Below, piece by piece: positions 49,193 to 64,000 of a stretch of 64,000 nt of DNA. The DNA is taken from the sequence record OQ427096.1, one strand, 5' to 3'. Positions within the stretch are counted from its first letter, which is position 1; the number at the start of each line of letters is the position of its first letter. Both the position numbers and the translations under genes were made by a program. The notes beneath the pieces are model-generated. The model worked only from the letters and a program-made list of their open reading frames with translations, made no database searches and had not been told where the DNA came from.

Positions 49193-50638
49193 ATGATTTT
49201 CAATCCGATCCTTGCAACAGACAGCTACAAGTTCTCGCACTTCATGCAGTACCCGAAGGGTACCACTATCGTCAAGAGTTATGTCACGGCGCGTGGCAGC
49301 AAGATTCCTGGCGTTACCGCAGTGGTTTGTGCTGGTCTGCAAATCTTCATTCACGAATATCTCAGCAAGCGCGTGACCAAGAATCACGTCGATCAGGCTG
49401 AGGCATTCTGTGCCAAGCACGGCGTTCCTTTCAACCGCGAAGGTTGGGACCTGATCGTCAACGATCACAACGGCTACCTGCCTGTCGAGATTCGCTCGGT
49501 TGAGGAAGGTACGCCGGTGCCGCTCAATGAGCTTATGATCTCCGTAATCAACACTGACGAGCGTCTGCCGTGGGTGACCTCGTATATCGAGACGCTCCTG
49601 CTGAGCTATGTCTGGTATGCCTCGACTGTGGCAACCAAGAGCCGCGAAATCAAGAAGGTCATCAAGCAGTACCTGGACATCACGTCGGACAATGCTGATG
49701 TGGAACTTCCGTTCAAGCTGCACGACTTCGGTTACCGTGGTGCAACTCCTGGCGCAGCTCATGTTGGTGCCTTCGCGCACCTGATCAACTTCATGGGTAC
49801 TGATACCGTCGCCGGCATCGAAGCTGCAATGGAGTACTACGGTTCGGATGTCTGTGGTTACAGCATCTCGGCTTCGGAGCATTCGACGATGACCAGTTGG
49901 GGTCGCGATGGTGAGTTCGATGCCTACCGCAACATGGTTGACTCCTACGCCAAGCCCGGTGCGATCTTCGCCTGCGTGATCGACAGCTACGACACCTTCG
50001 CAGCAATCGATATGTTCTGTGAAGACCGTTGTGCAGGTGGCTCGCTCCTGGACATCGTCAAGAACCGCGGTGCAACCATCGTGCTCCGCCCTGATAGCGG
50101 TGACCCGATCCAGATGCCAATTGACGTCATCAAGTACCTGATGGAAAAGGTCGGCTACGAGATCAACAACAAGGGTTACAAGGTCCTGCCGAGCCATGTT
50201 CGAGTGATTCAGGGCGATGGCATCGATATTGAAGACGTTGAGCACATCCTGGAGACCCTGGTCGAGGATGAAAAGATCAGCGCCTCGAACATCGCATTTG
50301 GCATGGGTGGCGGACTCCTTCAGAAGGTGAACCGTGATACGTTCAAGTTTGCTATGAAGGCGTGCCTGGCATACATCAACGGCGAAAAGGTAGACATCAT
50401 CAAGGATCCGGTCACTGACCCTGGCAAGAAGTCGAAGGCAGGCGACCTGAGCGTCTATCACAATCCGGAAACTGGAGAGTGGAAGACCATCACTGAAGGT
50501 TCGCTGGATTCGTTCGCTTTCAACAAGCCTTCGAGCAATTGGTATCGCAAGGACTATGTTGTCTATAGCCACTACGGTCGCGATACTTTCTTCGACTATG
50601 TGGACATGGATACTGTTCGTAGGAATGCTGCTCTTTAA
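49193..50638 (+). CDS. nadV: Nicotinamide phosphoribosyltransferase
   Basis: TDSYKFSH, LHDFGYRG, SISASEHS, VIDSYD, RPDSGDP, IQGDG, FGMGGGLLQ, RDT, KKSKAG. Confidence 0.97.
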   Translation: MIFNPILATDSYKFSHFMQYPKGTTIVKSYVTARGSKIPGVTAVVCAGLQIFIHEYLSKRVTKNHVDQAEAFCAKHGVPFNREGWDLIVNDHNGYLPVEIRSVEEGTPVPLNELMISVINTDERLPWVTSYIETLLLSYVWYASTVATKSREIKKVIKQYLDITSDNADVELPFKLHDFGYRGATPGAAHVGAFAHLINFMGTDTVAGIEAAMEYYGSDVCGYSISASEHSTMTSWGRDGEFDAYRNMVDSYAKPGAIFACVIDSYDTFAAIDMFCEDRCAGGSLLDIVKNRGATIVLRPDSGDPIQMPIDVIKYLMEKVGYEINNKGYKVLPSHVRVIQGDGIDIEDVEHILETLVEDEKISASNIAFGMGGGLLQKVNRDTFKFAMKACLAYINGEKVDIIKDPVTDPGKKSKAGDLSVYHNPETGEWKTITEGSLDSFAFNKPSSNWYRKDYVVYSHYGRDTFFDYVDMDTVRRNAAL

Positions 50639-50673
50639 GGGCAGCTTCCTTCATAATTACTATGGTGAGATGA

Positions 50674-51058
50674 ATGATTCTCAAGAGCGAAATCAGAATG
50701 TCCAAGGCTGAAATTGAAAGCCTCATCCTTGATCACCTGAAAAATAACAACAAGCACAATCTCAAGCTTGGTCGGGTAAGCTTCTCTGTTCGTGAGTCTG
50801 ACGACCACTATGGTGGCTACACTCCAGCTGATCTTGAAGGTGCAACTATTTCTGTGGAACTGGAGCTTGACGATGGAAGAGAGGATCGAAGATAAGATTT
50901 TGGCTTATCTGCGCGGTGAGGCGGACTACGATGTTACCCAACTGCTGCGTGATGCAAGAAACGAGATCGAAAAACTGAGAGCACGTGCGGTTGATCTTAG
51001 CTGGGCAGCGGACGTTGCCAATGATCGTGCAGATGCGTTCGATCCGAGGTACAACTAA
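50674..51058 (+). CDS. Two small hypothetical proteins (50674-50895, 50873-51058)
   Basis: Coupled ORFs. Confidence 0.55.
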
Positions 51059-52374
51059 TGTCACTGACCAACCTGTTTTCTTCAGGGATTGAATACCGGA
51101 AGCGCGTCATGGTGCTGGTCACCAAGCGCATGCTGAATCCGAAACGGGGTGGTGGAGTCTCTACGTTTGTGCGAGGCATTGCTAAGTCTATGCCTGACGA
51201 CACACTCGTAGAGATTCATTGCGTTGGACCAGATAATCTTGATGTCTATGAGATTGATCATCCGAATGTCGTAACCTATGGTTATCCTCAGATGGTGAAG
51301 ATCAAGGCAGAGGAGCCAGGCATCTTCCAGCGCATCATGATCAACTTCGATCAGATCGAAGAATTCCGCCACGCCTTGAACAAGTCGGTGTTCACGGAAG
51401 AGAAGCTCTATGATGCGATTGTGACTACCTGCCCCGAGTCGGCGCTGGCTTGCATTTCCTTTGGTGCGATGATCGAGCCATTCAATGTCATCTACACCAC
51501 GCACCACGGCTTGATGTCTGACAGCCTGAGCAAGGTTCCTTTCGATGACGCTGTTATCTACTTCGCCAACGAAGTGATTCCGAAGTCTGGCTTTGTCACC
51601 ACTGTGACTCAGACACCTCTGAATGCTGAGTGGCTGCAGGAAAAGCATGGCGTCGTAGTTGATCACGTGATTCCTCTGCTACCTGACGAGCTTCCTCCTT
51701 TTGTTGATATGGCAGGTAAGGAAGGCGCACTGTTCATCGGCAAGTACGAGACTGGCAAACGACCTGAGCTCTTTGTCGAGATGTGCAAGCAGACTGGCAT
51801 CAAGGGTAAGGTCATGTGCGGTGGTATCAAAGCTCCCGACGCATGGCACAAGGCTTTCAAGGAAGCTGGAGTTACCAACTACGAGATCCGTCAGAACCTG
51901 CAAGGCAAGGAAAAGGAAGACTTCATCGCATCTGCAAAGTTCACTTTCGTTTCCTCGCAGAACGAGTCGTACGGTTACCTGGCACTGGAAGGTCTGTTCA
52001 ACGGTCCTACCATGATTGCAGACAGCCGATGGGCGAAGTTCTGGGAAGGCTATGGCGCAACTCTGTTTACCAAAAAGAACATGGCTGAGGTGGCTAACCG
52101 TCTCAATGAGATGACTCTTTGGGACAACACCAAGCTGGTAAAGATGCTGGATGATGCTGAGAACAAGTGGGTTGACGTGATCTGTAATCGAAAGAATTAC
52201 AACACCAAGCCTAACTCTTCGATGCTCAAATATGTGACGCCGGAATGGCAGACTCTTGCTGACCTGGCAAAGGCGCGCGATGTTCGTAGCCTGTCAAGCG
52301 GAGACTACAAGCCTCTGTTTGATCACTGCGAGATCGTCCACAATGACATTGAATCAAAGGTGCGACGTGTCTGA
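51058..52374 (+). CDS. Second GT-B (GT4-like) glycosyltransferase
   Basis: GGGVSTFV, LFIGKYETGKRPELF, SQNESYGYLALEG. Confidence 0.82.
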   Translation: MSLTNLFSSGIEYRKRVMVLVTKRMLNPKRGGGVSTFVRGIAKSMPDDTLVEIHCVGPDNLDVYEIDHPNVVTYGYPQMVKIKAEEPGIFQRIMINFDQIEEFRHALNKSVFTEEKLYDAIVTTCPESALACISFGAMIEPFNVIYTTHHGLMSDSLSKVPFDDAVIYFANEVIPKSGFVTTVTQTPLNAEWLQEKHGVVVDHVIPLLPDELPPFVDMAGKEGALFIGKYETGKRPELFVEMCKQTGIKGKVMCGGIKAPDAWHKAFKEAGVTNYEIRQNLQGKEKEDFIASAKFTFVSSQNESYGYLALEGLFNGPTMIADSRWAKFWEGYGATLFTKKNMAEVANRLNEMTLWDNTKLVKMLDDAENKWVDVICNRKNYNTKPNSSMLKYVTPEWQTLADLAKARDVRSLSSGDYKPLFDHCEIVHNDIESKVRRV

Positions 52375-52639
52375 TATCACTGTAGGTGAAATGAAGAAGT
52401 GGCTTGAGCAATTTGCTGATGACACTACGCTGACGTTCGAAGGAAACTTCGGACCAGGCTTGCCTCAAATTGATCTGACCAACGATCAATTCCAGTATAA
52501 CTCATGGGAGGCCTGGTCTTACTCACCAGCCAGGCAGCCCTGGACTTATACGCCTACCGAGGAAGCTAAGTCGAGAGGTAATACGACTAAGACCTACCCG
52601 TATCATCCTGCGAACATCACGCTCGGTGAACAATCGTGA
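52367..52639 (+). CDS. Hypothetical protein
   Basis: GTG start with AAAGG RBS. Confidence 0.55.
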   Translation: MSDITVGEMKKWLEQFADDTTLTFEGNFGPGLPQIDLTNDQFQYNSWEAWSYSPARQPWTYTPTEEAKSRGNTTKTYPYHPANITLGEQS

Positions 52640-52800
52640 ATGACGGTAAAGCAGTTACGCCTCAAGAATTGAAAGCGTGGATGTTCAAGTTCTTCGGTGA
52701 TCACTACGGCCTTCTTGAGTGTAAGAAGGCCCTTGCCATGAATGAAAGAACGAGTGACGCTGTAAAGTGGCTAATCAAATCAGACCTGTTTCGGATCTGA
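52636..52800 (+). CDS. 54-aa protein resembling the EF-Ts N-terminal (UBA-like) domain (absent from the ORF track)
   Basis: VTPQELK...GLLECKKAL......AVKWLIKS. Confidence 0.6.
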   Translation: MNDGKAVTPQELKAWMFKFFGDHYGLLECKKALAMNERTSDAVKWLIKSDLFRI

Positions 52801-52815
52801 TTCCTAGCATCCCTG

Positions 52816-53100
52816 TTGACGAATGAATTAATCAATTACAATCCTTGCATGAAAATTGTCCAATTTAAGAACGGTAGGTTTGGTGTTCGCCGAGGATCCT
52901 TCTGGGATTACGGTTGGTGGACACATCAATTCCTAGATTATGAAGGTACCTGGGTAAAGAAGCAGGGATACAATATCGGTTCAGTGGAATGCTATTCCAA
53001 GGAAGAAGCTGAAAGGCGACTCAAGGATTACATTGAATCGGAAGCTTCATATCAGGCCTTTAAGGCATCTGCAAATGATATGGGTAAGCCTGTCAAGTGA
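52816..53100 (+). CDS. Hypothetical protein
   Basis: Open frame with typical phage composition; start uncertain. Confidence 0.55.
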   Translation: MTNELINYNPCMKIVQFKNGRFGVRRGSFWDYGWWTHQFLDYEGTWVKKQGYNIGSVECYSKEEAERRLKDYIESEASYQAFKASANDMGKPVK

Positions 53101-53104
53101 GCTA

Positions 53105-53500
53105 CACCGTCGGGACTAATCCACCGACGCTAATTTATATCATGAACAATAGGTTGTCCAACTAGCCGTCGGCTAAGCGTAGTCGCGACGTGAGATAGAG
53201 TGGGCAAGGCGAGCAATCGTCGGAAGTGCGTAATGTGAGAATAAGGAACCGAGAGGTTCTAAAGTATGACCTGCTCTGCCACACGGCAACAGGTGTTAGG
53301 CAAGTTGATTACTAACTGAATTCTTGTCTATGGCGTGAATCCCGCAAAGGGACCAAAGTGCAATTATAGGGCGATACCGTTCACCTCGTCCTGCTGGGAA
53401 GCAGATTGCAAGTTTGAGTGGTGATGGTATGGACGCAGTTCCCTTTTCTCATCGTCGCACTTTTGGTGGTAATAGCCAAAGTGTGGCTCCAATAAACCGC
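53105..53500 (+). ncRNA. Candidate large structured non-coding RNA, family unknown
   Basis: ~400 nt with no ORF in an otherwise gene-dense genome; many helices, several with GNRA loops. Confidence 0.65.
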
Positions 53501-53522
53501 AATTCTTTTAAAAACATATTTT

Positions 53523-54044
53523 ATGAATCAATTTCGATATGCAGGTATAGGATCTCGTGATACTCCTGTCTCCTTAAAACAAACGATGATGGACATAGCT
53601 TACTTCTTAGCGTATGAAGCTAATGCTATTCTCGTATCCGGTGGAGCTCGAGGTGCTGATTCGTTCTTTGAGGAAGGATGCGATCGTGCAGGTGGTAACA
53701 AAGAGATCTGGTTGCCAGAAGCAGGCTTCAATGGAAGCAAGTCTAAGTTGATTGGTGCATCGAAGGATGCCTATATCGTAGCTGAGCGATATGTAGGTCA
53801 TTGGAAGAACTGTAAGGCATGGGCACGAGCAGCACACGCACGAAACTGTCATCAGGTTCTCGGTGCCGATCTCCTCACTCCCGTTTCTTTCGTAGTGTGC
53901 TGGACACCTGGAGGTGAGAGAGTTGGTGGCACTGCTACAGCGATTTCTATTGCAGAAGATAAGGGCATTCCTATTCTCAACCTTGGATCGAAAGACTGGT
54001 CTGAGACAGAAATTTCTGATTGGCTAGAAATCCGGCTAAATTGA
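53523..54044 (+). CDS. SLOG-superfamily (DprA/YspA-like) nucleotide-binding protein
   Basis: YAGIGSR.TP, LVSGGARGADS.FE, RN..QVLG, GGTATA. Confidence 0.8.
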   Translation: MNQFRYAGIGSRDTPVSLKQTMMDIAYFLAYEANAILVSGGARGADSFFEEGCDRAGGNKEIWLPEAGFNGSKSKLIGASKDAYIVAERYVGHWKNCKAWARAAHARNCHQVLGADLLTPVSFVVCWTPGGERVGGTATAISIAEDKGIPILNLGSKDWSETEISDWLEIRLN

Positions 54045-54098
54045 CCTTTCTAGGTACTGTCTGTAGACTGTATGGACTAAGGTGATTGGGAGTTAGTC

Positions 54099-54670
54099 AT
54101 GGGTTACGGAACACGTCCGAACAATTTCGGTGGAAACATCAGAACTTTCCAGCCTGACAATACGAAAGATGTGCTGTACATCGACACGACTTTTTCGTCG
54201 GTCACGCTGAAGGAACTCATGGAGAAGATCCGTGAACACTTCGGCAGTGATGATATCGAGAAATTCGATATCGAGGCTCAGTACATCCACACGGATTGCC
54301 TGGGCTACGACTGTTATGACCCCGGTGACTACTCCAGCTTCATCGTCATCACTCGCACAGGAATCCTGTAATGGCTGCTCGATTCAGTCGTCACGCGAAG
54401 CCTCTCTACCGTATCAACCAGCACGGTGAGCTCTACAAGGCGAGTGAAGAATTCAAGACCACCATCCGTCGAGCTGGAGTCTGGAACCGCCCTGCATGTT
54501 TCCGTTGGTGGGCTGAAGGATGCCGAGAGATCAACACCTGGGTATTCGATTCCCAGGGTCAGCATCGTCTCATTGTTGGATACGATCCTGAGACTGACCT
54601 TCTGTATCTCGGGCGCACCTTGACCGAAGAACGCCACCTCCCCAACCGTTTTAAGAATCGAGACATCTGA
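54099..54670 (+). CDS. Two hypothetical proteins (54099-54371, 54371-54670)
   Basis: Behind promoter TTGACC-N17-TAGACT (54041-69). Confidence 0.6.
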
Positions 54671-55617
54671 TGACTGCTCTGCTGATTGGCTCCAACGCAC
54701 TTCGCGCACACGGCATCGCTGTTGAGCGCAGGAACCTGGACATGGACTTCATTGCTACGATGGATTCCATCAAGGCGATGATCGATCGGAACAAGACGCG
54801 CTTCGTCAAGATTCAGCACAGCGAAGATGCGAACCATCTGTTCATGTTCCCTCGTAATGGGAACGACGCCATCTTCGATATCGAAATCGCATGGCTCGAT
54901 TCTGTCAGTGATACCCTCATTGACATCGTCCTGAACAACGGCCTCTACAAGATGACCGAGGAGGGCTACTACGCCGTTTCTCCGTCGGTTGTGCTGGCAC
55001 TCAAGCTGTCGCACAAGTACAAGAAAAACTCGCGTCACTTCCTGAAAACGATGCGCGACATTCAGATGCTCAAGGGACTTGGCTACAAGGTTCCGAAGTG
55101 TCTGAGTGAGTGGCTCAAGGATCGCAAGAAGTGGACCTACGACTATAAGCATCCCAAGTTGGAAGGTGGTGTGACCAAGGCTGACTTCTTCAAGGACGAT
55201 GGCATTCGCTATGTCTACGATCACGACAGCATCCACGTCGCAGTGAAACATCTGCACCAGCCCGCCTATCGCTACTTCCAGCCTGACGGTGAGGAAGTGG
55301 GCACGTCGAAGGAAGACTTCTTCGCTCAGCCGCGTGAGGTACAGCTTCTGGCAGTCCTCGAGGAAAGCTATGTGCTGAGTCTCGAGCGCGCCATTGTTCC
55401 GTTCAACTTGAAGACTATCGAGCAGCGGAAGAAGGCTTTTGACACTGCTCTGGAAAAGGTCTGCACGAGCATCACGTCTGGTTGGTTCCGGAAGTTTGCC
55501 TGGGATAACTTTGACGAAGTGAATGACCTGTATAATCAGGAATATGTGGACCGCTTCTGGCTCGAAGTCGAAAGCGGCAATGTGAAGCCCTACGTGAAGG
55601 AAGAAAATGCTTACTGA
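54670..55617 (+). CDS. Minimal pol-beta-type nucleotidyltransferase with helical C-terminal domain
   Basis: LLIGSNAL...NLDMDFI (GS, DxD), FDIEI. Confidence 0.75.
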   Translation: MTALLIGSNALRAHGIAVERRNLDMDFIATMDSIKAMIDRNKTRFVKIQHSEDANHLFMFPRNGNDAIFDIEIAWLDSVSDTLIDIVLNNGLYKMTEEGYYAVSPSVVLALKLSHKYKKNSRHFLKTMRDIQMLKGLGYKVPKCLSEWLKDRKKWTYDYKHPKLEGGVTKADFFKDDGIRYVYDHDSIHVAVKHLHQPAYRYFQPDGEEVGTSKEDFFAQPREVQLLAVLEESYVLSLERAIVPFNLKTIEQRKKAFDTALEKVCTSITSGWFRKFAWDNFDEVNDLYNQEYVDRFWLEVESGNVKPYVKEENAY

Positions 55618-55852
55618 AACTGCAAAGGCGTCTATTATCCAAAAGGTCGAAGAGATCAAGGCGCTGATGGATGAAGCAAAGCTGATCGGGCGCATTGACG
55701 TCTCAGGTCGCGATGCATACCCAGGCGATTTCGTGATCGACGAGATCCGCACCATTGCTCCGGCGGGCTCTGAGCATTGGTCGCACAGTTCGTGCTGGGA
55801 TGATGAACCTGTCCCTTATGACCCGCCCTCCTGGAATGCGAGTAACTGCTAA
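55607..55852 (+). CDS. Small protein with two W-x-x-S-x-C motifs
   Basis: ...WSHSSC...WNASNC*. Confidence 0.7.
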   Translation: MLTETAKASIIQKVEEIKALMDEAKLIGRIDVSGRDAYPGDFVIDEIRTIAPAGSEHWSHSSCWDDEPVPYDPPSWNASNC

Positions 55853-56043
55853 TGGCTAAAGATGATTTCGATCAGCGAGTTGAAGTAATCAAGCTCCTTG
55901 TCAATGAACTGGATAAGGAGTTGTCTGAACTCAATGTCAGGCACAATGTCGATTACAAGATTGACATGCAAGTCCAAGACAAGCATGGTTCTTACATCGT
56001 AGGCACATCGGAGTCCAGCGACTGGTCTGCGAGTTGGTGCTGA
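55852..56043 (+). CDS. Small protein ending WSASWC
   Basis: Helical N-terminus, motif at the C-terminus. Confidence 0.7.
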   Translation: MAKDDFDQRVEVIKLLVNELDKELSELNVRHNVDYKIDMQVQDKHGSYIVGTSESSDWSASWC

Positions 56044-56061
56044 TAACTGTCCTATAAAGGA

Positions 56062-56322
56062 ATGATAATGAAGAAGATTCTGTTGGTTGCTGTTCTGGCT
56101 GCCGTTGTTGGACTGTCGGGTTGTACCGATGCAGAACGCGCAAGCTGGGGCTCGCTGGGTGAGCAGGCAAAGGTCACCTGTTACAGCGGTGGTCAGGTCA
56201 TCAAGGAATACGAGTCCACCGGTAAGGTGATGAAGCTCGATGGTGACGGCTTCGCCTTCAAGAACAAGGAAACTGGCAAGTTCGTTCGCGCCTTCGCCGA
56301 CTGTCTGGTGGAAGAGAAATGA
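56062..56322 (+). CDS. Lipoprotein
   Basis: MKKILLVAVLAAVVGLSG-C lipobox. Confidence 0.78.
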   Translation: MIMKKILLVAVLAAVVGLSGCTDAERASWGSLGEQAKVTCYSGGQVIKEYESTGKVMKLDGDGFAFKNKETGKFVRAFADCLVEEK

Positions 56323-56549
56323 TCAGTCCTTGTGATGGCGGCGGAAGTGTCGACCCGGGTCGCGCCAAGTTTGAGGAAGCTGTCTTCCGGCAGTATTTCA
56401 TCAAGCATGTTGGAAGTGATCTGAGGATGAAGCCAGGTATCGTCAACAAGGCTGAGTTCTGCAAGCGGGACGAAAATGGTAACTACGTGCGCGAAGAAGT
56501 AAGCGCAATGTGGTTTGGTTGGAAACTTTATCAGAAGGAAAACGTGTAA
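56319..56549 (+). CDS. Hypothetical protein
   Basis: ATGA-coupled. Confidence 0.6.
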   Translation: MISPCDGGGSVDPGRAKFEEAVFRQYFIKHVGSDLRMKPGIVNKAEFCKRDENGNYVREEVSAMWFGWKLYQKENV

Positions 56550-56728
56550 TGACCGTCGAGAAAGAACGTCATCAGAAGATCGCCGCACTCCTGGACAGTG
56601 CTTCCAAGCAGCTGGAAGAGGCACGCCAGTTGGCAGGCAACGACACCTATCACTGGTCTGGTCCTACCTATGGTATGGGTGGCTGGATCGAGTCTGGCGA
56701 ATGGCAGGCATCTAGCCATTCTTGCTGA
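56549..56728 (+). CDS. Small protein ending GPTYGMGG...WQASSHSC
   Basis: Paralogue of 56739-56963. Confidence 0.72.
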   Translation: MTVEKERHQKIAALLDSASKQLEEARQLAGNDTYHWSGPTYGMGGWIESGEWQASSHSC

Positions 56729-56738
56729 GGAATGAGAA

Positions 56739-56963
56739 ATGGAATACGCTGATTTTGAAAGCCGTAAGAAGCGCATCGAGCAGTTGATTGGTGAGGCTGA
56801 GGGCCTGCTCGAGGAAGCTCGCGAAATGTCCGATGGTCTCTTTGATGAAGGAGCAACGCGCTCCTGGCAGGCAAAGCCGTCATTCAGGTTTGAAGGCCCT
56901 ACGTATGGTATGGGCGGGTCGCTGCAGGATGGCGAATGGTTTGCATCGAGTCAGTCGTGCTAA
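56739..56963 (+). CDS. Small protein ending GPTYGMGG...WFASSQSC
   Basis: Paralogue of 56549-56728; GAGG RBS. Confidence 0.72.
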   Translation: MEYADFESRKKRIEQLIGEAEGLLEEAREMSDGLFDEGATRSWQAKPSFRFEGPTYGMGGSLQDGEWFASSQSC

Positions 56964-56978
56964 AAGAGTGAAAGGGTA

Positions 56979-57011
56979 GGGACATTGGCACTTCGGTGCC
57001 TTTGTCCTTTT
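56979..57011 (+). terminator. Intrinsic terminator
   Basis: GGACA-TT-GGCAC-TTCG-GTGCC-TT-TGTCC-TTTT. Confidence 0.8.
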
Positions 57012-57033
57012 AGGTAAACCAAAGGAATATCAT

Positions 57034-57561
57034 ATGCAACGTGACTTCATCGAAACCTGGTCTGGCGTCAACCTATACATGCCTGACCCAGATCCGGAAT
57101 CCATCCTCATCGAAGACATTGCGCACGCTCTGTCGAAGGTGTGTCGTTTTGCCGGTCATGTGGATCGCTTCTACTCTGTAGCTGAGCACTCCATCCACGT
57201 CTCCTACGCTGTACCTCCGGAACATTCTCTGCAAGCACTTCTGCATGATGCGACTGAGGCTTACCTGTGTGACATTCCTACTCCGTTCAAGCGGATGATT
57301 CCTGCCTATGCGGAACTGGAAGACAATCTATGGGCAGTGATTGCTGAAAAGTTTGGCGTGCCGTTCAAACTGCACGAGACTGTCAAGCTGGCGGATCGAA
57401 TGCTGCTCCTGTCGGAACGTGATGCACTCAAGGAACACTCCAAGCGCCAATGGCCTGCGGAATACGAGAACCATCGTCGTTGGGAAGGCTTCTATGAAAT
57501 GAACCTGACCCAGGAACAAACTGCTCGTGTCTTCCTCAAGCGATTTTCAGCTCTTCGGTAG
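57034..57561 (+). CDS. HD-domain phosphohydrolase (YfbR/YfdR-like)
   Basis: IEDIAHALS..CRFAGH...YSVAEHS, LLHDATEAY..DIPTPFK. Confidence 0.88.
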   Translation: MQRDFIETWSGVNLYMPDPDPESILIEDIAHALSKVCRFAGHVDRFYSVAEHSIHVSYAVPPEHSLQALLHDATEAYLCDIPTPFKRMIPAYAELEDNLWAVIAEKFGVPFKLHETVKLADRMLLLSERDALKEHSKRQWPAEYENHRRWEGFYEMNLTQEQTARVFLKRFSALR

Positions 57562-57599
57562 AGTAAATACTGGGAAGTAAACCCCAACATGGAATTGAA

Positions 57600-58644
57600 A
57601 TGAGTACCGAAGAAAAAGTGAGTGTGCTGCCTCTGCCGGAAGATCCTGCTTACCTCCAGTGGCTGCGAAAGGAAGGCTTTGAACTCGAAAGCACTGTCCC
57701 GATGGAATCAGACAGCATTGTCTGGGTTCGTAAGACAAAGTATGGCGTGCCACGTTGTCTGATGAATGGTGTTGTCCTTGTCGAGATCGTGAAGACCGGC
57801 GACCAGTTTAGCATGGGCGTTCGTGCCTCGGCTAAGAATTACTGGGGTGCGGCTTCCATCTATGGCATTGATGAAGAGAACCTTGTCAGGCTGGGTCGCC
57901 AGTACGAACAGCGAGTGGTGGACGCATGGCGGGAATTGAGCGCCTAAGAGAGCAGATTGTCGATTACCTTATCGCGAATAAGGAGGCAATCTTGATGACG
58001 CAGCAGTCTCAGTTCTGTGGACCTTGTGGTGGCATGAAAGTCACCACAGTCTACCGTAACCCAGATTGTGGTCAAATCGGAGTCTGGCTAGATGATTACA
58101 GACGAGAAACGGGCACTTGAGCCCCGAGATCGAGAGTACATCATTTTCGTTCTAGATGGAGCATACGCTCATGGTGAAAGTCTATCTGAGCACCTGCATC
58201 TGTTCGACGAATTTGAGATTACTCGTGCACAACGAAACGAAGTTATCTTAGCATCCGACTTTGGTCAAGATGAGGATCTTGTTTCAGCAATCACTTTATT
58301 TGGGTGACCTATGTCTTATACTTTTACGGACGGCTTGAAAGACGTCATCAACGGTAATTTTTCAAACGGTGGTGAGTCCAATCGCAGGTACGAAATGTGC
58401 AAGGCTTGCCCATTGTTCAATTCTGTCGTGCTCACATGTGGTTCTTGCGGATGCTTCATGCCCGCGAAAACCAAACTCGTTAACGCAACATGCCCTGAGG
58501 GCAAATGGTAAAATGACCTACCGAGACACGTATTTCTTCGACTTGTGCCGTGAGGCTGGGTTCGACGTAACCGATCCACACGATTGGGTCGAAATGAGTA
58601 TTTTCGCTAAGGAAGTGCTGATCGAAGAATCGGAAGAAGACTGA
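57600..58644 (+). CDS. Five small hypothetical proteins (57600-57947, 57926-58120, 58092-58307, 58311-58511 Cys-rich CPEGKW zinc finger, 58513-58644)
   Basis: Coupled ORFs; CKAC...CGSCGC...CPEGKW. Confidence 0.6.
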
Positions 58645-58710
58645 GGCTTGTTCTTTCACAGTGAATCTATAAACTATGATTTGTGGGCAGTGTGCCCCGA
58701 GGTGAAATGA

Positions 58711-58992
58711 ATGTTCAAGTGTCCTGTTTGTGGTGATTACTCCAATTCGGCTGCTTCATTGGAGTCGCACGCTGCTTGGAAGCACGGTCGACGCATTCGA
58801 GCTGAAAACTATCGTGCGCCATCGCATGATATGACACCGTCAAGTACTGGTGACGCACTTGTTGGTTTGGCTGTAGGATATGCTTTGTCATCGATGTTTG
58901 ATTCATCGAGTAGCGATTACAGTTCGTCATCGTCGGATTGGTCCGGTGGTGGCGGAGACTCTGGAGGCGGTGGCGCTTCTGGGGACTGGTAA
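58711..58992 (+). CDS. C2H2 zinc-finger protein with a Gly/Ser-rich tail
   Basis: CPVC...HAAWKH; GGGGDSGGGGASGDW. Confidence 0.7.
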   Translation: MFKCPVCGDYSNSAASLESHAAWKHGRRIRAENYRAPSHDMTPSSTGDALVGLAVGYALSSMFDSSSSDYSSSSSDWSGGGGDSGGGGASGDW

Positions 58993-59014
58993 AAAGTTGT
59001 AAAGATATAGTGGT

Positions 59015-59380
59015 ATGAAGCCAATCGAAAGGTTGCTTGGACGCGGGTTCGATTCCCGCCAGGTCCACCAAGAACACATTTGATCGCCTTAGCGGGCTTT
59101 CTCTAGTCAGAGCGGATCGTCCTTCGGTGTCTGACAAGATGGGAAGCGTGGGCAAGAGTAAGATGACGTGAGCACCACGGCAAGTGTGTTGTTGATGGGC
59201 CTGCCCAGGTTTCGACAGGCAGGTAATTAGAAACGAGCAGACCACTGTTGAGAGTATCCACTCAACTGAATAAAGATGCAAACTAGCTAAATGTCGCTGC
59301 TAACGACGCCGATTACTCCGTAGCTCGCTACGCCTAATCGCTCAGTCCTCGCCCCTACTGAGTTCCTCATTGGGGCCCCT
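59015..59380 (+). ncRNA. ssrA: Circularly permuted (two-piece) tmRNA
   Basis: Acceptor piece ending GGACGCGGGTTCGATTCCCGCCAGGTCCACCA (CCA at 59070) precedes coding piece GGGCCTG...TTCGAC (59197); G3:U70 pair; ANDA-type tag frame; downstream pseudoknot. Confidence 0.9.
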
Positions 59381-59427
59381 AATTTCATTCTTCGAGAGAT
59401 TAAATACGAAGAAAAGGCACACGAACA

Positions 59428-59823
59428 ATGACTGATAACGAACAACCAAAGCAGAGAATCAATCCTCGCATCTACGGATGGTTGTCCGATATCATGACCT
59501 GGGTCGGAGTGCTGTTCCTTGGTGTCATCCTCGGCAGCGCAATCACGCAGTCGATTGCCATCAAGGACCGTGATCTGTTGGTTTCATCCTACACCCAGAC
59601 GATCGCAACAAAAGATCAGTTGATTGAATCTTTGTCGGTGACAACGGTGAAGGCTGCTGACGTTGCACTCAATCAGAGTACGACTGAGGTAACCAAGGCA
59701 CTTGATACAATGTCTGAGCGCGATAAGACGCTGCGTGACATTGAGAAGCGAATTGAAACAAAGCAGCGCCAAGACGCAGCAAAGAAGGCTGCTGAGGAGC
59801 GTAAACTGCGAGGTCTCAAATGA
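59428..59823 (+). CDS. Inner-membrane spanin-like protein (second pair)
   Basis: Single TM plus coiled coil; GATTAAATA box at 59398-406. Confidence 0.7.
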   Translation: MTDNEQPKQRINPRIYGWLSDIMTWVGVLFLGVILGSAITQSIAIKDRDLLVSSYTQTIATKDQLIESLSVTTVKAADVALNQSTTEVTKALDTMSERDKTLRDIEKRIETKQRQDAAKKAAEERKLRGLK

Positions 59824-60032
59824 GAATTCTCGTCCTGTTGTTAGCACTTGTTCTCGCTGGATGTAAGCACGTTCCTTTGGATTTGACGGAACCGTGTTAT
59901 GTGCCACAAAAGACCACCGAGTCGGTTGATGAAGCTGTAAGGCTTGCCAATGACCGTCACGATGCTCTTGTGGAGTGTAATGCGAAACTAGAAAAGATCA
60001 GAACGATCTTAGACCCAAAGGCCAGTCAATGA
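59820..60032 (+). CDS. Outer-membrane lipoprotein spanin-like protein (second pair)
   Basis: LAG-C lipobox, two further Cys, ATGA overlap with the upstream TM gene. Confidence 0.75.
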   Translation: MRILVLLLALVLAGCKHVPLDLTEPCYVPQKTTESVDEAVRLANDRHDALVECNAKLEKIRTILDPKASQ

Positions 60033-60556
60033 GTTTTGAAACGTACCTGAAAGAATCAGCAGCAGCTGAGGAAGCACACAAACTGGGATTGTCCGCAGCC
60101 GGTTATGGCCTTTGGCGCGACAAGACCGGTAAGGTGGTGAAGAAGACCGTAGATGATAAACTTGTGGACGTTCGTGGCTCTGAGGCGAACCTGAAGCATC
60201 ATCACACCAACATTCCTCAGAACCGCGAAGGCAACCATGCAGAGCACGATCAGTCTTCGGACATTGTCTCTGCACATGAGACACCTGGAACATTCCGCGA
60301 AAGCGAAGTGACCAAGTATCACATCAACGAACACTCTGCGGTACATCCTGACAAGGCTGGAGAGCTGCACAACGCATTGGTTGGCGCAGGCTATAAGCAT
60401 TCTCCTTCGGCGTTTGGTCAGATGTATCAAAAAGGTAAGACCTCGGTGATGATCTCCAACCGTCCAGAGATTAGCGCAAAGCGCGGCGGAAAGAACGATC
60501 ATCACAGTGTTCTAATTCGTACCGATCATGTGGCAAAGAAGAAGCCTAAGAAGTAA
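60029..60556 (+). CDS. Probable internal head protein, His-rich
   Basis: N-terminal MSFETYLKE capsid-targeting-like motif. Confidence 0.6.
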   Translation: MSFETYLKESAAAEEAHKLGLSAAGYGLWRDKTGKVVKKTVDDKLVDVRGSEANLKHHHTNIPQNREGNHAEHDQSSDIVSAHETPGTFRESEVTKYHINEHSAVHPDKAGELHNALVGAGYKHSPSAFGQMYQKGKTSVMISNRPEISAKRGGKNDHHSVLIRTDHVAKKKPKK

Positions 60557-60568
60557 ACCTTTGAGGAT

Positions 60569-61433
60569 TTGATTATGAGCAGGCTGGAAGATTTTGTTAT
60601 GCCGGTAGGGACCGAAGAGATTCTCTTCATTGATGGCGAGCATCGTGTGGTAAAGATGACCGTCATTGATCGCCGTGAAGCAGGTATTAATCTGTTCCAC
60701 AATTTTCATATCCGTATGTTGCAGGATGCACATTTCATCTATGGTTTGAAAAAGAAAGAGGTTCTAAAGTCTCGTTGGGGTCACATGACACCTGATGAAT
60801 CTTTTGACCTTGCTCAGTCACTTAGCAGGATCGCGCTGGACCTCGGTCTGGTAGTTGGCAATGGAGTGAGGATTTAATTATGTGCGTTGTTTCGATGATT
60901 GGTGACTCGTTCCAGGATCGTTGGAAGGATCGTCTTCCGAATGATTGGACCATTCCGGCAATGCCGATGCCTTCGCAGCCTATGGCACCTCCGTTCAAGG
61001 AGCGCCGCATTGATGTATCGCATCCGTTCCAGGCGATCAGTCGCGTTGAGTTTGACCTCCTGAAAAAGGAAGTCGAAATCATGAAGGACCTTCTGGAGCG
61101 TGCTATCAAGTACGACAAGGACAACAATGAGCCTCATTGCGAGACGGAGAGCAAGATCGCATTCCTCAAGCAAGTGGCAAAGGCTGTTGGCGTTGACCTT
61201 GAAGAAGTCTTCGGTAAATAACAATGAAGAGCTTTTTTGACGAACAGGGTAGCTTCAATGAGGACGCCCGACAGTTCACAAAAGACGCGCAAGAGATCCT
61301 AAGGCCATTAATGCAGAAATATGCCGGTGCCGGATTTAGCTCGCGTGAAATAGTTTACCTCATTTCAGATGTGGCTTCGATTGAAGAGATCTACATCCGC
61401 CAGGTAAAGAGAATCAGAGATAAGCGTCCTTAG
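60569..61433 (+). CDS. Three hypothetical proteins (60569-60877, 60880-61221, 61224-61433)
   Basis: Closely spaced ORFs; the last stop codon lies inside tRNA-Val. Confidence 0.6.
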
Positions 61434-61499
61434 ATCAGTTGGTAGATCATCTGCTCGACACGCAGAAGGCCACAGGTTCAAGTCCTGTAGGACGCACCA
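61424..61499 (+). tRNA. tRNA-Val(GAC) with C33
   Basis: GCGTCCT/AGGACGC stem, loop TCGACAC, TTCAAGT T-loop, encoded CCA. Confidence 0.9.
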
Positions 61500-61505
61500 A
61501 GTTTT

Positions 61506-61583
61506 GCCTTAGTAGAGAATTGGTAGATCGGCTCCGCTCAAAACGGAGTGTCATTGTCGGTTCGAGTCCGACCTGAGGCACCA
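61506..61583 (+). tRNA. tRNA-Leu(CAA) with an unusually short variable region
   Basis: GCCTTAG/CTGAGGC, loop CTCAAAA, TTCGAGT, CCA. Confidence 0.88.
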
Positions 61584-61585
61584 AG

Positions 61586-61765
61586 ATGACAAACGAAGAA
61601 AAGATCGCTGCAAAGGCAGCAGAAGTAGTACACTACGAAGGAGTCCTTGAACGTTACGGTTCGGGTCGCTGGCTTGACATGGGTCGCCGTCACCTGGCTG
61701 AATTGAACAGGGAACTTCAAGAGTTACGCTCTCAAAGTATTGATGGTGATACGCCGCCCTCGTAA
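61586..61765 (+). CDS. Possible 59-aa ORF between tRNAs, ending inside tRNA-Thr
   Basis: MTNEEKIAAK...; GAGG of the tRNA-Leu 3' stem lies 7 nt upstream. Confidence 0.45.
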   Translation: MTNEEKIAAKAAEVVHYEGVLERYGSGRWLDMGRRHLAELNRELQELRSQSIDGDTPPS

Positions 61766-61802
61766 CGCGGATAAGACAGTTCAAGTCTGTCTGAGAGCAC
61801 CA
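61728..61802 (+). tRNA. tRNA-Thr(CGT)
   Basis: GCTCTCA/TGAGAGC, loop CTCGTAA, C31:C39 mismatch, CCA. Confidence 0.88.
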
Positions 61803-61808
61803 AAACCT

Positions 61809-61884
61809 GGCTATGTGGGTGAGCGGTTTAGCCGACGTCCTCATAAGGCGTTTCACACTGGTTCGAATCCAGTCATAGCCACCA
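61809..61884 (+). tRNA. tRNA-Met(CAT), elongator type (Ile2 not excluded)
   Basis: GGCTATG/CATAGCC, loop CTCATAA, CCA. Confidence 0.88.
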
Positions 61885-61893
61885 ATTGAAACG

Positions 61894-61920
61894 AGCCCTG
61901 TTCATTCAGGGCTTTTCCTT
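61894..61920 (+). terminator. Terminator after the tRNA cluster
   Basis: AGCCCTG-TTCATT-CAGGGCT-TTTCCTT. Confidence 0.7.
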
Positions 61921-61933
61921 GGCTGGTCAGGTA

Positions 61934-61996
61934 TAAGTCCTTGATACTCTATTGTTCATAGTGGGTGTCCTGTATTATAACCACTATAGCTTGTGG
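61934..61996 (+). promoter_or_regulatory. nrdA upstream region: IHF-like site, TTGTTC -35 and tandem NrdR-box-like sites
   Basis: TAAGTCCTTGATA (61934-46); CCACTATAGCTTGTGG (61981-96) plus a half-matching box 32 bp upstream (61949-64). Confidence 0.55.
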
Positions 61997-62039
61997 GTAA
62001 ATAAAAACCCCGTCATATTGAGGAAGTCAGGTGTAAGGC

Positions 62040-64000
62040 ATGGGCAGAAAAGAAATCAACGTAACAAAGAGAAACGGCAAGCGTGAGCCGTATGATGTGG
62101 CAAAGATTCAACGCCAGATCGAATACGCATGTGATGGGATTGCTAATGTATCGCAGTCCATGATTGAACTCTCGATGAACCTCGAGTTGTTTGACGGGAT
62201 CAAGACATCTGACATTGATGAGCTGGCTATCCGAGCAGCCGTGAACCTGATCCTCAGCGAAGAGGGTCACACCAACTACCAATACGTTGCAGGTCGTCTG
62301 GCATCATACGCTCTCCGCAAGGAAGTCTATGGTCAGTATGAAGTGCCTTCGCTGTTCTCGATTGTGAAGAAGAACGTAGCCAAGGGCCTCTACTCGGATG
62401 AACTGCTGACCTGGTACTCGGAAGATGAGTGGAACCTCATTGAGACCTTTGTTGACCACACCAAGGATGAACGCTTGTCTCATGCTGCAATTCAGCAGTT
62501 GGTAGACAAGTATCTGGTTCGCAATCGCTCCACAAAGGAATACGTTGAGACCCCTCAGATTCGCTACATCGTAGCTGCGGCAACGGCAATGCACGCTGAG
62601 CCTGCAAAGCAGCGCATGAAGCGAATCAACGAATACTACAAGCAGGCTTCCAATGGCGAATTCACCCTCCCAACTCCTGTCCTTGCCGGTCTTGGCACAC
62701 CAACTAAGCAGTTCTCAAGCTGTGTCCTACTTCGTTCTGACGACACTCTCGACTCTATCTTCGCTACTGGCGAGATGGTGGCAAAGTATTCGGCAAAGCG
62801 AGCTGGTATTGGGCTTGAAATCGGTCGTCTTCGCCCCGCCGGTGCACCTATCCGCGGAGGCGAGATTGCTCATACAGGCTTGACCCTCTTCATCAAGAAG
62901 TGGTTCAGTGATATGCGTAGCTGCTCGCAGGGTGGCATCCGCAATTCGTCTGCGACACTCACCTACCCGATTTGGCACTACGAGTTTGAGGAACTGATCG
63001 TTCTGAAGAACAACCAGGGTACAGAAGAGAATCGTGTTCGTCACTTTGACTACTCAGTTGTCACCTGCAAGTATCTATGGAATCGTTTCCGTAATCAGGA
63101 GATGATGACCTTCTTCGATCCGAATGAAGTTCCTGACCTGTACGAAGCATACTACCGTGATCAGGCTGAGTTTGTTCGTCTCTACGAGAAGTATGAGAAG
63201 CAGGATGGACTGCGCAAGCGCCAGCTCAATGCAGCAGATGCCTTCGGTGCATTCCTCACTGAACGCTCAGACACCGGTCGCATCTTCGAGGTCTACATCG
63301 ACAACGTGATTGATCAGGGTCCGGTAGATTCCCAGACATGGCCTATCTATCAGTCAAACCTGTGTCAGGAAATCTTGCTACCTACGCGTCCGTTCCAGCG
63401 TTTGGAAGATGAAGAAGGTCGTATCGCACTCTGCACTCTGGGTTCGATCGTGCTGGGCAAGTTCAAGAAGCCTCAGGATATGCGAGGCGCATGCCGTACT
63501 CTGGTTCGCAGCCTCGACAACTTGCTGTCCTATCAGATCTTCCTGTCACCACAGGCTGCGAATGCAAATGAAGACTTCCGTCCTCTGGGCATTGGCATCA
63601 CTGACCTTGCACACTGGCACGCTCAACGTGGCTACACCTACGGTCAGCCTGAAGCACTTGCTGAGTTTGCAAAGTGGATGGAGCACATTCACTACTATTG
63701 CATCGAGGCTTCGATTGAACTAGCCGAAGAGCGTGGACCGTGTAAGGAATGGAAGAACACTTCGTATGCAGAAGGCATTCTGCCTATCGACAAGCGTTCA
63801 CCAAACCTGGATGAAGTCCACAAGATTGAGTTGACTCTGGACTTCGATGCTCTACGTGAGCGTGTTAAAGTTTCGGGCATCCGTAATGGCCTCCTGCAGG
63901 CAACGGCGCCAGTTGAAAGCTCGTCGGTTGTGGTTGATTCGTCGAATGGTATGGCTCTGCCTAAGGCACTGATCTCTACCAAGGAATCCAAGGGTAGCTC
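62040..64000 (+). CDS. nrdA: Class Ia ribonucleotide reductase large subunit with ATP cone (truncated at the window end)
   Basis: VTKRNG ATP cone, TLPTPVLAG, FSSCVL, GIRN, KNNQG, QSNLCQE, LCTL, RPLGIG. Confidence 0.97.
   Translation, partial: MGRKEINVTKRNGKREPYDVAKIQRQIEYACDGIANVSQSMIELSMNLELFDGIKTSDIDELAIRAAVNLILSEEGHTNYQYVAGRLASYALRKEVYGQYEVPSLFSIVKKNVAKGLYSDELLTWYSEDEWNLIETFVDHTKDERLSHAAIQQLVDKYLVRNRSTKEYVETPQIRYIVAAATAMHAEPAKQRMKRINEYYKQASNGEFTLPTPVLAGLGTPTKQFSSCVLLRSDDTLDSIFATGEMVAKYSAKRAGIGLEIGRLRPAGAPIRGGEIAHTGLTLFIKKWFSDMRSCSQGGIRNSSATLTYPIWHYEFEELIVLKNNQGTEENRVRHFDYSVVTCKYLWNRFRNQEMMTFFDPNEVPDLYEAYYRDQAEFVRLYEKYEKQDGLRKRQLNAADAFGAFLTERSDTGRIFEVYIDNVIDQGPVDSQTWPIYQSNLCQEILLPTRPFQRLEDEEGRIALCTLGSIVLGKFKKPQDMRGACRTLVRSLDNLLSYQIFLSPQAANANEDFRPLGIGITDLAHWHAQRGYTYGQPEALAEFAKWMEHIHYYCIEASIELAEERGPCKEWKNTSYAEGILPIDKRSPNLDEVHKIELTLDFDALRERVKVSGIRNGLLQATAPVESSSVVVDSSNGMALPKALISTKESKGS

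Follow-up and report, generated by a model that had tools for sequence, protein, structure and literature searches.

Does the tmRNA of Xanthomonas phage X1 mark rescued proteins with two residues or with a full-length peptide? The question is posed by nine nucleotides, GCA AAC TAG, that lie between a tmRNA-like hairpin and a longer open frame in a 64,000-nt stretch of phage DNA (hereafter the window; positions 62001-126000 of the X1 record OQ427096.1, 200,058 bp, host X. campestris pv. campestris 8004). Coordinates below are those of the window unless stated otherwise. A sequence-only reading of this stretch had proposed GCA 59278 as the resume codon and UAG 59284 as the stop, giving a two-residue, non-degron tag (Ala-Asn, added to the Ala that the tmRNA carries) that might alternate with a long tag by way of readthrough or a second resume site. 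The letters on which it was built are real: GCA (59278-80), AAC (59281-83) and TAG (59284-86) are followed in one single frame by CTA AAT GTC (59293) GCT (59296) GCT (59299) AAC, and so on through GCC (59332) to TAA (59335-37). Here we ask what the RNA around these letters looks like, where its tag frame is likely to start, and what the tag might do.

A circularly permuted tmRNA gene absent from the annotation

That the locus specifies a phage tmRNA is borne out by two programs. Positions 59009-59337 match the Rfam family tmRNA_permuted (RF04321) along the full model (1-213) with 76.6 bits (gathering score 47, E = 6.5e-13), and ARAGORN places a permuted tmRNA, whose tag reads VAANDADYSVARYA, at 58978-59428. 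The permutation is seen in the gene itself, where the acceptor piece lies upstream of the coding piece, and we conclude that 59009-59376 is a circularly permuted (two-piece) tmRNA gene (Table 1). In the window, the Rfam model for the Betaproteobacteria-type two-piece tmRNA (RF01850) gave no report at its gathering score of 84 bits, a score that is reached by the RNAs of the Menderavirus phages, DLP_6 and JGB6 (92-104 bits); the X1 RNA is a divergent relative of the RF01850 type that does not score as a member.

The genome nearest to X1 is that of Xanthomonas phage BUDD (ON758385.1; ~87% identity across window positions 50000-64000 by megablast), which was isolated independently of X1. No tmRNA is annotated in the GenBank record of either phage, and in that of BUDD a hypothetical CDS has been drawn across part of the two-piece gene. 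What is gained for annotation is therefore a complete two-piece tmRNA gene that was missed in both records. A simple promoter and terminator scan of 58700-59500 detected nothing.

Between the two pieces lies an intervening segment whose length is widely variable across relatives, and which is presumably cut out during precursor processing, going by what is known of permuted tmRNA genes (PMC11915505). At the other end of the RNA, 3' of the stop codon, the helix 5 stem is formed by CUCAGU (59341-46) and ACUGAG (59357-62), and the loop sequence GCCCC (59351-55) pairs with GGGGC (59372-76) to make pseudoknot 2. Read by eye, this layout is common to relatives and its arms covary, with CACAGC/GCUGUG and GCCCC/GGGGC in DLP_6, CUUCC/GGAAG in L019, UGACC/GGUCA in L026 and AUCCC/GGGAU in L028.

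Table 1. Parts of the X1 two-piece tmRNA gene (window coordinates)
Feature	Position	Strand	Basis and remarks
Acceptor piece	59009..59070	+	Rfam RF04321 alignment, ARAGORN, sequence
Helix P2, 5' strand AGUGG	59009-13	+	Pairs with CCACU 59242-46
T-arm	59043-59	+	Within acceptor piece; sequence, Rfam alignment
Acceptor 3' strand CAGGUCC	59060-66	+	Pairs with GGGCCUG 59197-203 (7-bp acceptor stem)
Discriminator A	59067	+	Followed by encoded CCA 59068-70
Intervening segment, ~126 nt	59071..59196	+	Insertion in Rfam alignment
Coding piece, 5' part	59197..59246	+	Sequence, Rfam alignment; 100% identical in BUDD
Acceptor 5' strand GGGCCUG	59197-203	+	G59199 opposite U59064, the G3:U70 alanine identity pair
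D-loop analogue GGUUUCGAC and P2 strands ending CCACU (59242-46)	within 59197..59246	+	
Pseudoknot 1	59247..59279	+	Pairing and covariation in X1, BUDD and L038
GCA AAC TAG	59278..59286	+	G59278/C59279 in stem 2 of pseudoknot 1, remainder linker; predicted to be untranslated
Linker AAACUAGCUAAAU, single-stranded, 13 nt	59280..59292	+	Carries frame-setting U59288 (-5) and A59289 (-4)
Tag reading frame GUC GCU GCU AAC GAC ... CGC UAC GCC UAA	59293..59337	+	ARAGORN; encodes VAANDADYSVARYA and stop
Helix 5 and pseudoknot 2	59341..59376	+	3' of the stop codon; sequence

Pseudoknot 1 and the GCAAA junction

The hairpin that had been likened to the tmRNA element pk1 is present (59247-52/59261-66), it ends 11 nt before GCA, and that codon does have A at -4; but this hairpin makes up no more than half of an H-type pseudoknot, whose second stem takes the G and the C of GCA. 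Stem 1 consists of GUUGAG (59247-52) paired with CUCAAC (59261-66; 6 bp) and stem 2 of GUAUC (59254-58) paired with GAUGC (59275-79; 5 bp), with a loop 1 of 1 nt and an A-rich loop 3 of 8 nt (59267-74), and G59278 and C59279 form the final two pairs of stem 2. Scored over X1, BUDD and L038, a metagenomic relative, the 11 pairs were formed in 33 of 33 cells, as against 30-52% in slid controls. Four pairs have changed on both sides among these sequences, three of them in stem 1 and one in stem 2 (C59258-G59275 to U-A), and inside the X1 clade the stem 2 covariation thus amounts to one compensatory pair in three sequences. Minimum-free-energy folding of 59240-59300, with a program that cannot predict pseudoknots and is silent on stem 2, gave stem 1 only and did no better than shuffles (z = -0.52).

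A wider comparison bears on the same two nucleotides. In a 13-sequence alignment the UGCAAA of X1 falls on a CGCAAA block that stands 12-15 nt 5' of the resume codon, and in eight other phage tmRNAs the GC of this block closes a bulged 7-bp helix that is 100% paired and shows four compensatory pairs. Moreover, DLP_6 carries a compensatory change of GC to AU at exactly the positions equivalent to G59278 and C59279. We read the GCAAA block, from this alignment, as a conserved non-coding junction across the family.

Where the tag frame is likely to begin

The most likely resume codon, judged by its sequence context, is GUC 59293. It has U at -5, A at -4 and A at -3, and a linker of 13 nt separates it from pseudoknot 1; in the family this linker is usually 12-15 nt and typically 13. 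Among 28 distinct phage permuted tmRNAs, the resume codons called by ARAGORN have A at -4 (28/28, a count that is partly circular, as ARAGORN probably picks the resume codon using upstream context), a pyrimidine at -5 (27/28) and a purine at -3 (25/28). The resume codon of E. coli tmRNA follows PK1 at a distance of 12 nt, and A86, at -4, is the main frame determinant (PMC2481249); this base stacks on Tyr55 of SmpB, with a pyrimidine at -5 guarding against a -1 shift (PMC8363625).

The block CUAAAUGUC GCN GCN AAY GAY is common to five lineages (X1/BUDD, L038, the Menderavirus phages, L039 and variants), and among X1, L038, the Menderavirus phages and L039 the differences from 59296 on fall at third codon positions only (GCU/GCA, AAC/AAU, GAC/GAU), whereas CUAAAUGUC is invariant. 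Because only third positions vary, 59296 onward is coding. As called by ARAGORN, the tag frame has 14 codons and ends with UAA (59335-37). Resumption at GUC would place Val first in the tag, which is unusual.

The same tmRNA could instead resume at GCU 59296 (tag AANDADYSVARYA) or at GCU 59299 (tag ANDADYSVARYA), and Ala codons are indeed the usual resume codons. For the former, the triplet at -3 to -1 would be GUC as in E. coli (PMC2481249), and the synonymous variation begins exactly there while the GUC before it is invariant, as expected of a recognition element; for the latter, it is here that the Rfam consensus GCA AAC GA is aligned. However, the base at -4 would then be U (59296) or C (59299) where the 28 relatives have A, in E. 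coli tagging is lost or shifted when a pyrimidine occupies -4 (PMC2481249, PMC8363625), and the linker would grow to 16 or 19 nt as compared with the usual 13. We therefore consider a start at either GCU unlikely, though of the two 59296 is retained as a possible start in the mechanism given below.

Selection on the RNA and the question of a relic

Comparison of X1 with BUDD indicates purifying selection on this RNA. Identity in the acceptor piece is 98.4%, and the sole change there (59009 A to G) retains the pair with U59246; the 5' tRNA-like part, the linker and the tag are each 100% identical; and pseudoknot 1 is 88% identical, its four changes making up one compensatory pair and two loop bases. 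Taken together, the parts of the mature RNA are 88-100% identical and all of their changes are structure-neutral, and the flanking ORFs are 50% and 88% identical.

This pattern bears on a second alternative, namely that the gene is a decaying relic, or a decoy that titrates SmpB or alanyl-tRNA synthetase without productive tagging in the manner proposed for the TLD-only RNA of mycobacteriophage DS6A. RNAs of the DS6A type do inhibit tmRNA (PMC4131195), the X1 RNA has the lowest Rfam score of its family (76.6 bits versus 103-137), its tag end is non-canonical and its intervening segment is long. Yet every module is intact, from G3:U70, T-arm and CCA to pseudoknot 1, the resume context, an open tag frame with its stop, helix 5 and pseudoknot 2, and the differences from BUDD are either compensatory or in loops, against 50-88% identity in the flanks. 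A relic or decoy is in our judgement very unlikely.

The in-frame UAG

A productive tmRNA being the favored reading, there remains the TAG that stands in frame upstream of its tag. A sequencing error was considered and rejected, because the independently isolated BUDD has the same linker and tag. A recoded TAG was rejected likewise: of the 42 long ORFs on the plus strand of the window 2 end in TAG, and the ORFs show no fragmentation. Nor could we find the means for readthrough, for which an amber suppressor tRNA elsewhere in the genome had been suggested as something to look for: the 200-kb X1 genome has 41 tRNAs (37 of them at 136-147 kb of the record, the other four in the window), and none carries a CUA anticodon. 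Among its tRNA-like genes, one that is conserved has an abnormal AUUUAG loop.

Conservation of the triplet does not extend far. It is identical in BUDD alone, its place being taken by AAG in L038, GCA in the Menderavirus phages and AAA in L039. We also rejected the conserved X1/BUDD linker as evidence for the UAG: since the whole RNA is nearly identical in the two phages, the presence of UAG in BUDD is uninformative.

Over 26 related phage tmRNAs, A makes up 52% and U 15% of the 15 nt 5' of the resume codon, and from this composition the chance of at least one in-frame stop in those 15 nt is about 0.25; such a stop is seen in 2/26 lineages. An out-of-frame UAA or UAG at -5 to -3, which bears the frame-setting U and A, occurs in 16/26. 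The in-frame position of the TAG is a coincidence, a stop there being no commoner than chance.

We can now return to resumption at GCA 59278. There is something to be said for it: the codon has A at -4 and a purine at -3, GCA AAC mimics the A-N start of a tag, two-residue Ala-Ala tags are reported from some bacteria such as Fermentibacterota (PMC11915505), GCA AAC TAG recurs in BUDD, and a minor resumption there is conceivable were pseudoknot 1 to melt. A minimal two-residue tag, though, implies a stop two codons past a canonical resume position, and GCA 59278 overlaps stem 2 through two nucleotides that are paired with covariation, follows pseudoknot 1 with no linker at all (12-15 nt in relatives, 12 nt in E. 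coli; PMC2481249), and has A at -5 in place of the usual pyrimidine, within an AAA run, a U85A-like state that causes frame slippage (PMC2481249, PMC8363625). In relatives, moreover, the homologous GCAAA block precedes sense codons or is out of frame; an indel of 1 nt separates L038 from X1 in the stretch from pseudoknot 1 to the resume block, and in L038 this puts the upstream GCA out of frame with the tag. With the UAG missing from L038, the Menderavirus phages and L039, and the genome devoid of a CUA suppressor, we regard the Ala-Asn tag, alone or alternating with the long one, as improbable in the extreme. More generally, a hairpin followed by an Ala codon is insufficient for calling a tmRNA resume codon; one also has to look at stem 2 of the pseudoknot, at how long the linker is and at the bases in -5 and -4.

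A proposed mechanism

We hold it very probable that 59009-59376 is a phage two-piece tmRNA in which GCA AAC UAG forms the edge of pseudoknot 1 plus linker and is untranslated, with tagging resumed at GUC 59293 or possibly GCU 59296. In the sequence of events that we envisage, cleavage of the precursor would release a coding piece and an acceptor piece with CCA at its end, and these would pair to form an alanine-accepting tRNA-like domain with G3:U70. No smpB is found among the annotated genes of the X1 record, and we therefore infer that the RNA depends on SmpB of the host, with which it would enter stalled ribosomes. Pseudoknot 1 would remain folded during tagging, SmpB would read the U(-5) A(-4) context at 59288-59289, and translation would pick up at GUC 59293, or possibly GCU 59296, adding (Ala)-VAANDADYSVARYA before termination at UAA 59335.

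Relatives and known systems

Phage-encoded two-piece tmRNAs are an already known kind: 53 of 133 unique phage tmRNAs are of two-piece form (PMC9004378), and the tmRNA database holds 79 bacteriophage sequences (PMC11915505). The X1/BUDD RNA is a divergent, unannotated member of this kind in which pseudoknot 1 has been rebuilt and the end of the tag is unusual.

Its relatives include the RNAs of the Menderavirus phages (Marzo, Mendera, Moby, IME-SM1 and YB07, all Stenotrophomonas myophages), of which that of Marzo was published as a beta-class SsrA (PMC8928761). They have the gene order of X1 (acceptor piece, intervening segment, coding piece), and in both the tmRNA adjoins a small cluster of tRNA genes that precedes the gene for ribonucleotide reductase alpha; likewise shared are the resume block CUAAAUGUC GCN GCN AAC GAC, the 13-nt linker and tags of equal length that start with VAAND. 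The X1 RNA differs from theirs in pseudoknot 1 (a 6-bp stem 1 and a 5-bp stem 2 versus a 7-bp bulged helix), in the linker, where X1 has UAG for their GCA, in the tag end (ARYA versus RIAA), and in falling short of the beta_tmRNA gathering score that they reach.

Closest of all outside X1/BUDD is the tmRNA of L038, the metagenomic contig IMGVR_UViG_3300025597_000090 (the same sequence occurs on Ga0116192_1035220, L044). It shares with X1 the architecture and the loop of pseudoknot 1, the resume block and a 13-residue AAND... tag; unlike X1, it has stem 1 arms that compensatory changes have swapped, U-A for C-G at one pair of stem 2, a linker shorter by 1 nt with AAG for UAG, and a tag that ends in RRAA.

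Pattern searches added few others. In IMG/VR, AAATGTCGCTGCNAACGA returned only the Menderavirus phages and three chance matches without a tmRNA, while CTAAATGTCGCNGCNAAYGA brought in L038 and L039; TAGAAAYGAGCAGACNAC gave two more chance matches and no new relative, and a metagenome search with AATTAGAAAYGAGCAGACCAC found just a second copy of L038. Since these searches yielded no further close relative, the X1 clade consists of three sequences, X1, BUDD and L038. A back-translated pattern of a presumed Xanthomonas tag, on which no claim here is based, gave no match, and the bacteria hit by a genome search with the 5' motif of the family were unrelated ones (Desulfuromonadales, Anaerococcus, Acetobacteraceae and others), with none of the Xanthomonadales among them.

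The one-piece tmRNA of E. coli resembles that of X1 in having PK1, an A-rich linker of ~12 nt, U(-5) and A(-4) before the resume codon, an AAND..Y tag start (AANDENY, to which SspB binds) and a stop codon that immediately precedes helix 5 (PMC2481249, PMC8363625, PMC8512704). The X1 gene, in contrast, is permuted and presumably yields two RNA pieces, its first tag codon is likely Val, and its tag ends in R-Y-A where that of E. coli ends in L-A-A, the main ClpX determinant (PMC7652416). Permuted ssrA genes are also carried by the OM43 phage Melnitz and by pelagiphages, although those tmRNAs are of alphaproteobacterial type, mostly marine and in some cases associated with a glutamine riboswitch (PMC9004378), whereas that of X1 belongs to a beta-like family of Xanthomonas and Stenotrophomonas phages.

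The tag end and the fate of tagged proteins

The long tag of the sequence-only reading, ...ANDADYSVARYA, is encoded by the RNA and has, as was pointed out there, an R-Y-A end; the nearest relatives end in A-A. The complete predicted tag, (A)VAANDADYSVARYA, ends in Arg-Tyr-Ala; same-length tags of the nearest relatives end in RRAA (L038), RIAA (Menderavirus phages) and RLAA (L039), and because these all end in AA the penultimate Tyr is a change specific to X1/BUDD. The ssrA degron is an Ala-Ala-COOH, usually with an aliphatic residue before it, and of this the X1 tag has the terminal Ala, with Tyr in the penultimate position and Arg before that. At the same time it contains AANDADY, which equals AANDENY at 5/7 positions and with equal spacing.

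In E. coli, Ala-Ala-COOH is the main determinant for ClpX, and replacing the penultimate residue increases KM and leaves Vmax little changed (PMC7652416), while AANDENY binds SspB independently of the C-terminal module, such that a weakened end makes degradation adaptor-dependent (PMC8512704). By analogy, we tentatively raise the possibility, as a minority reading, that X1/BUDD have kept an SspB-type module (AANDADY) and swapped Ala-Ala for Arg-Tyr-Ala, so that rescued proteins would be degraded weakly, only through an adaptor, or by a different protease. Such a tag would resemble the engineered AANDENY...DAS tags, or the switch to Lon in Mycoplasma. Were this true, the phage could free ribosomes while its own truncated products would escape ClpXP degradation at the rate that is normal for the host. 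The uncoupling of rescue from proteolysis, possibly switchable, that the sequence-only reading had put forward would then have its basis in the Tyr-Ala end.

X1 and BUDD may have company in this respect. Tags that end in X-Ala with a penultimate residue other than Ala (X = N, M, T, L or Y) are found in 8 of 26 phage permuted tmRNA lineages, and non-Ala-Ala ends could be a wider phage trend; if they alter the fate of tagged proteins, this bears on why phages carry a tmRNA of their own. Outside the phages, a Clostridium tag ends in AFA.

In-frame stops, a tRNA-like gene and a CUA-anticodon tRNA

In-frame stops upstream of the resume codon, of which the TAG at window 59284-59286 ahead of the X1 tag frame is an example, are possibly under mild avoidance in phage tmRNAs; 2 of 26 lineages have one in the 15 nt before that codon, where about 6.5 would be expected from base composition, although this is not a formal test, as the 26 sequences share kinship. 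Outside the window, X1 carries a tRNA-like gene, 'tRNA-OTHER', which is 100% identical to its BUDD counterpart over 86 nt, as against about 87% between the two genomes. It is no canonical suppressor; its anticodon arm can form a loop of 6 nt (AUUUAG) or 8 nt and never of 7, ARAGORN assigns it an anticodon of 2 nt, and both UUA and UAG triplets are found within the loop. An amber-suppressor-type tRNA with a CUA anticodon (labelled Pyl by ARAGORN) is found on the metagenomic phage contig IMGVR_UViG_3300010412_000110 (L039), approximately 700 nt from a permuted tmRNA that has the same resume block as X1 and encodes the tag VAANDNDIMDMRLAA, and the linker of this tmRNA has no in-frame stop.

tRNA genes in and around permuted tmRNA genes

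In one group of contigs from marine phages, the permuted tmRNA gene harbours a tRNA-Asn gene in its intervening segment, and a tRNA-Thr adjoins the start of the tmRNA gene. With this arrangement, tRNA-processing enzymes could free every piece from a single transcript. X1 itself has a tRNA-Thr (CGU) that is absent from its record annotation, where the hypothetical CDS WEM34390.1 (window 61586-61765) covers the start of the tRNA.

Location of tRNA and tmRNA features
Feature	Sequence	Position	Strand	Support
tRNA-Asn in tmRNA gene	L020	2411-2483
tRNA-Asn in tmRNA gene	L022	2703-2778
tRNA-Asn in tmRNA gene	L030	2331-2406
tRNA-Asn in tmRNA gene	L035	6697-6772
tRNA-Asn in tmRNA gene	L037	7632-7707
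CUA-anticodon tRNA and permuted tmRNA	L039	10961-11039 and 11744-12156	(-)
tRNA-Thr (CGU)	X1 window	61728-61802		ARAGORN; Rfam (47.2 bits)
tRNA-OTHER	OQ427096.1 (L042)	140850-140923 (14951-15024)
tRNA-OTHER	BUDD (L047)	100-173

Tag ends, annotation and transcription signals

Among distinct permuted tmRNAs, counting phages only, 8 of 26 encode a tag that ends in X-Ala with a penultimate residue other than Ala (NA, MA, TA, LA or YA) rather than in Ala-Ala; these come from L016, L017, L020, L022, L030, L034, L035 and the window. No tmRNA is annotated by GenBank at window 59009-59376 in X1 or at the equivalent place in BUDD (L002 2876-3196), and in BUDD a hypothetical CDS (USV41083.1) overlies the acceptor piece together with part of the intervening segment. 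Simple scans of window 58950-59010 and 59380-59427 found neither a sigma-70-type promoter nor an intrinsic terminator around the X1 gene, whereas the L039 tmRNA has an obvious TTGACA...TATATA upstream. Phage X1 also encodes a sigma factor of its own (record 56015-56494).
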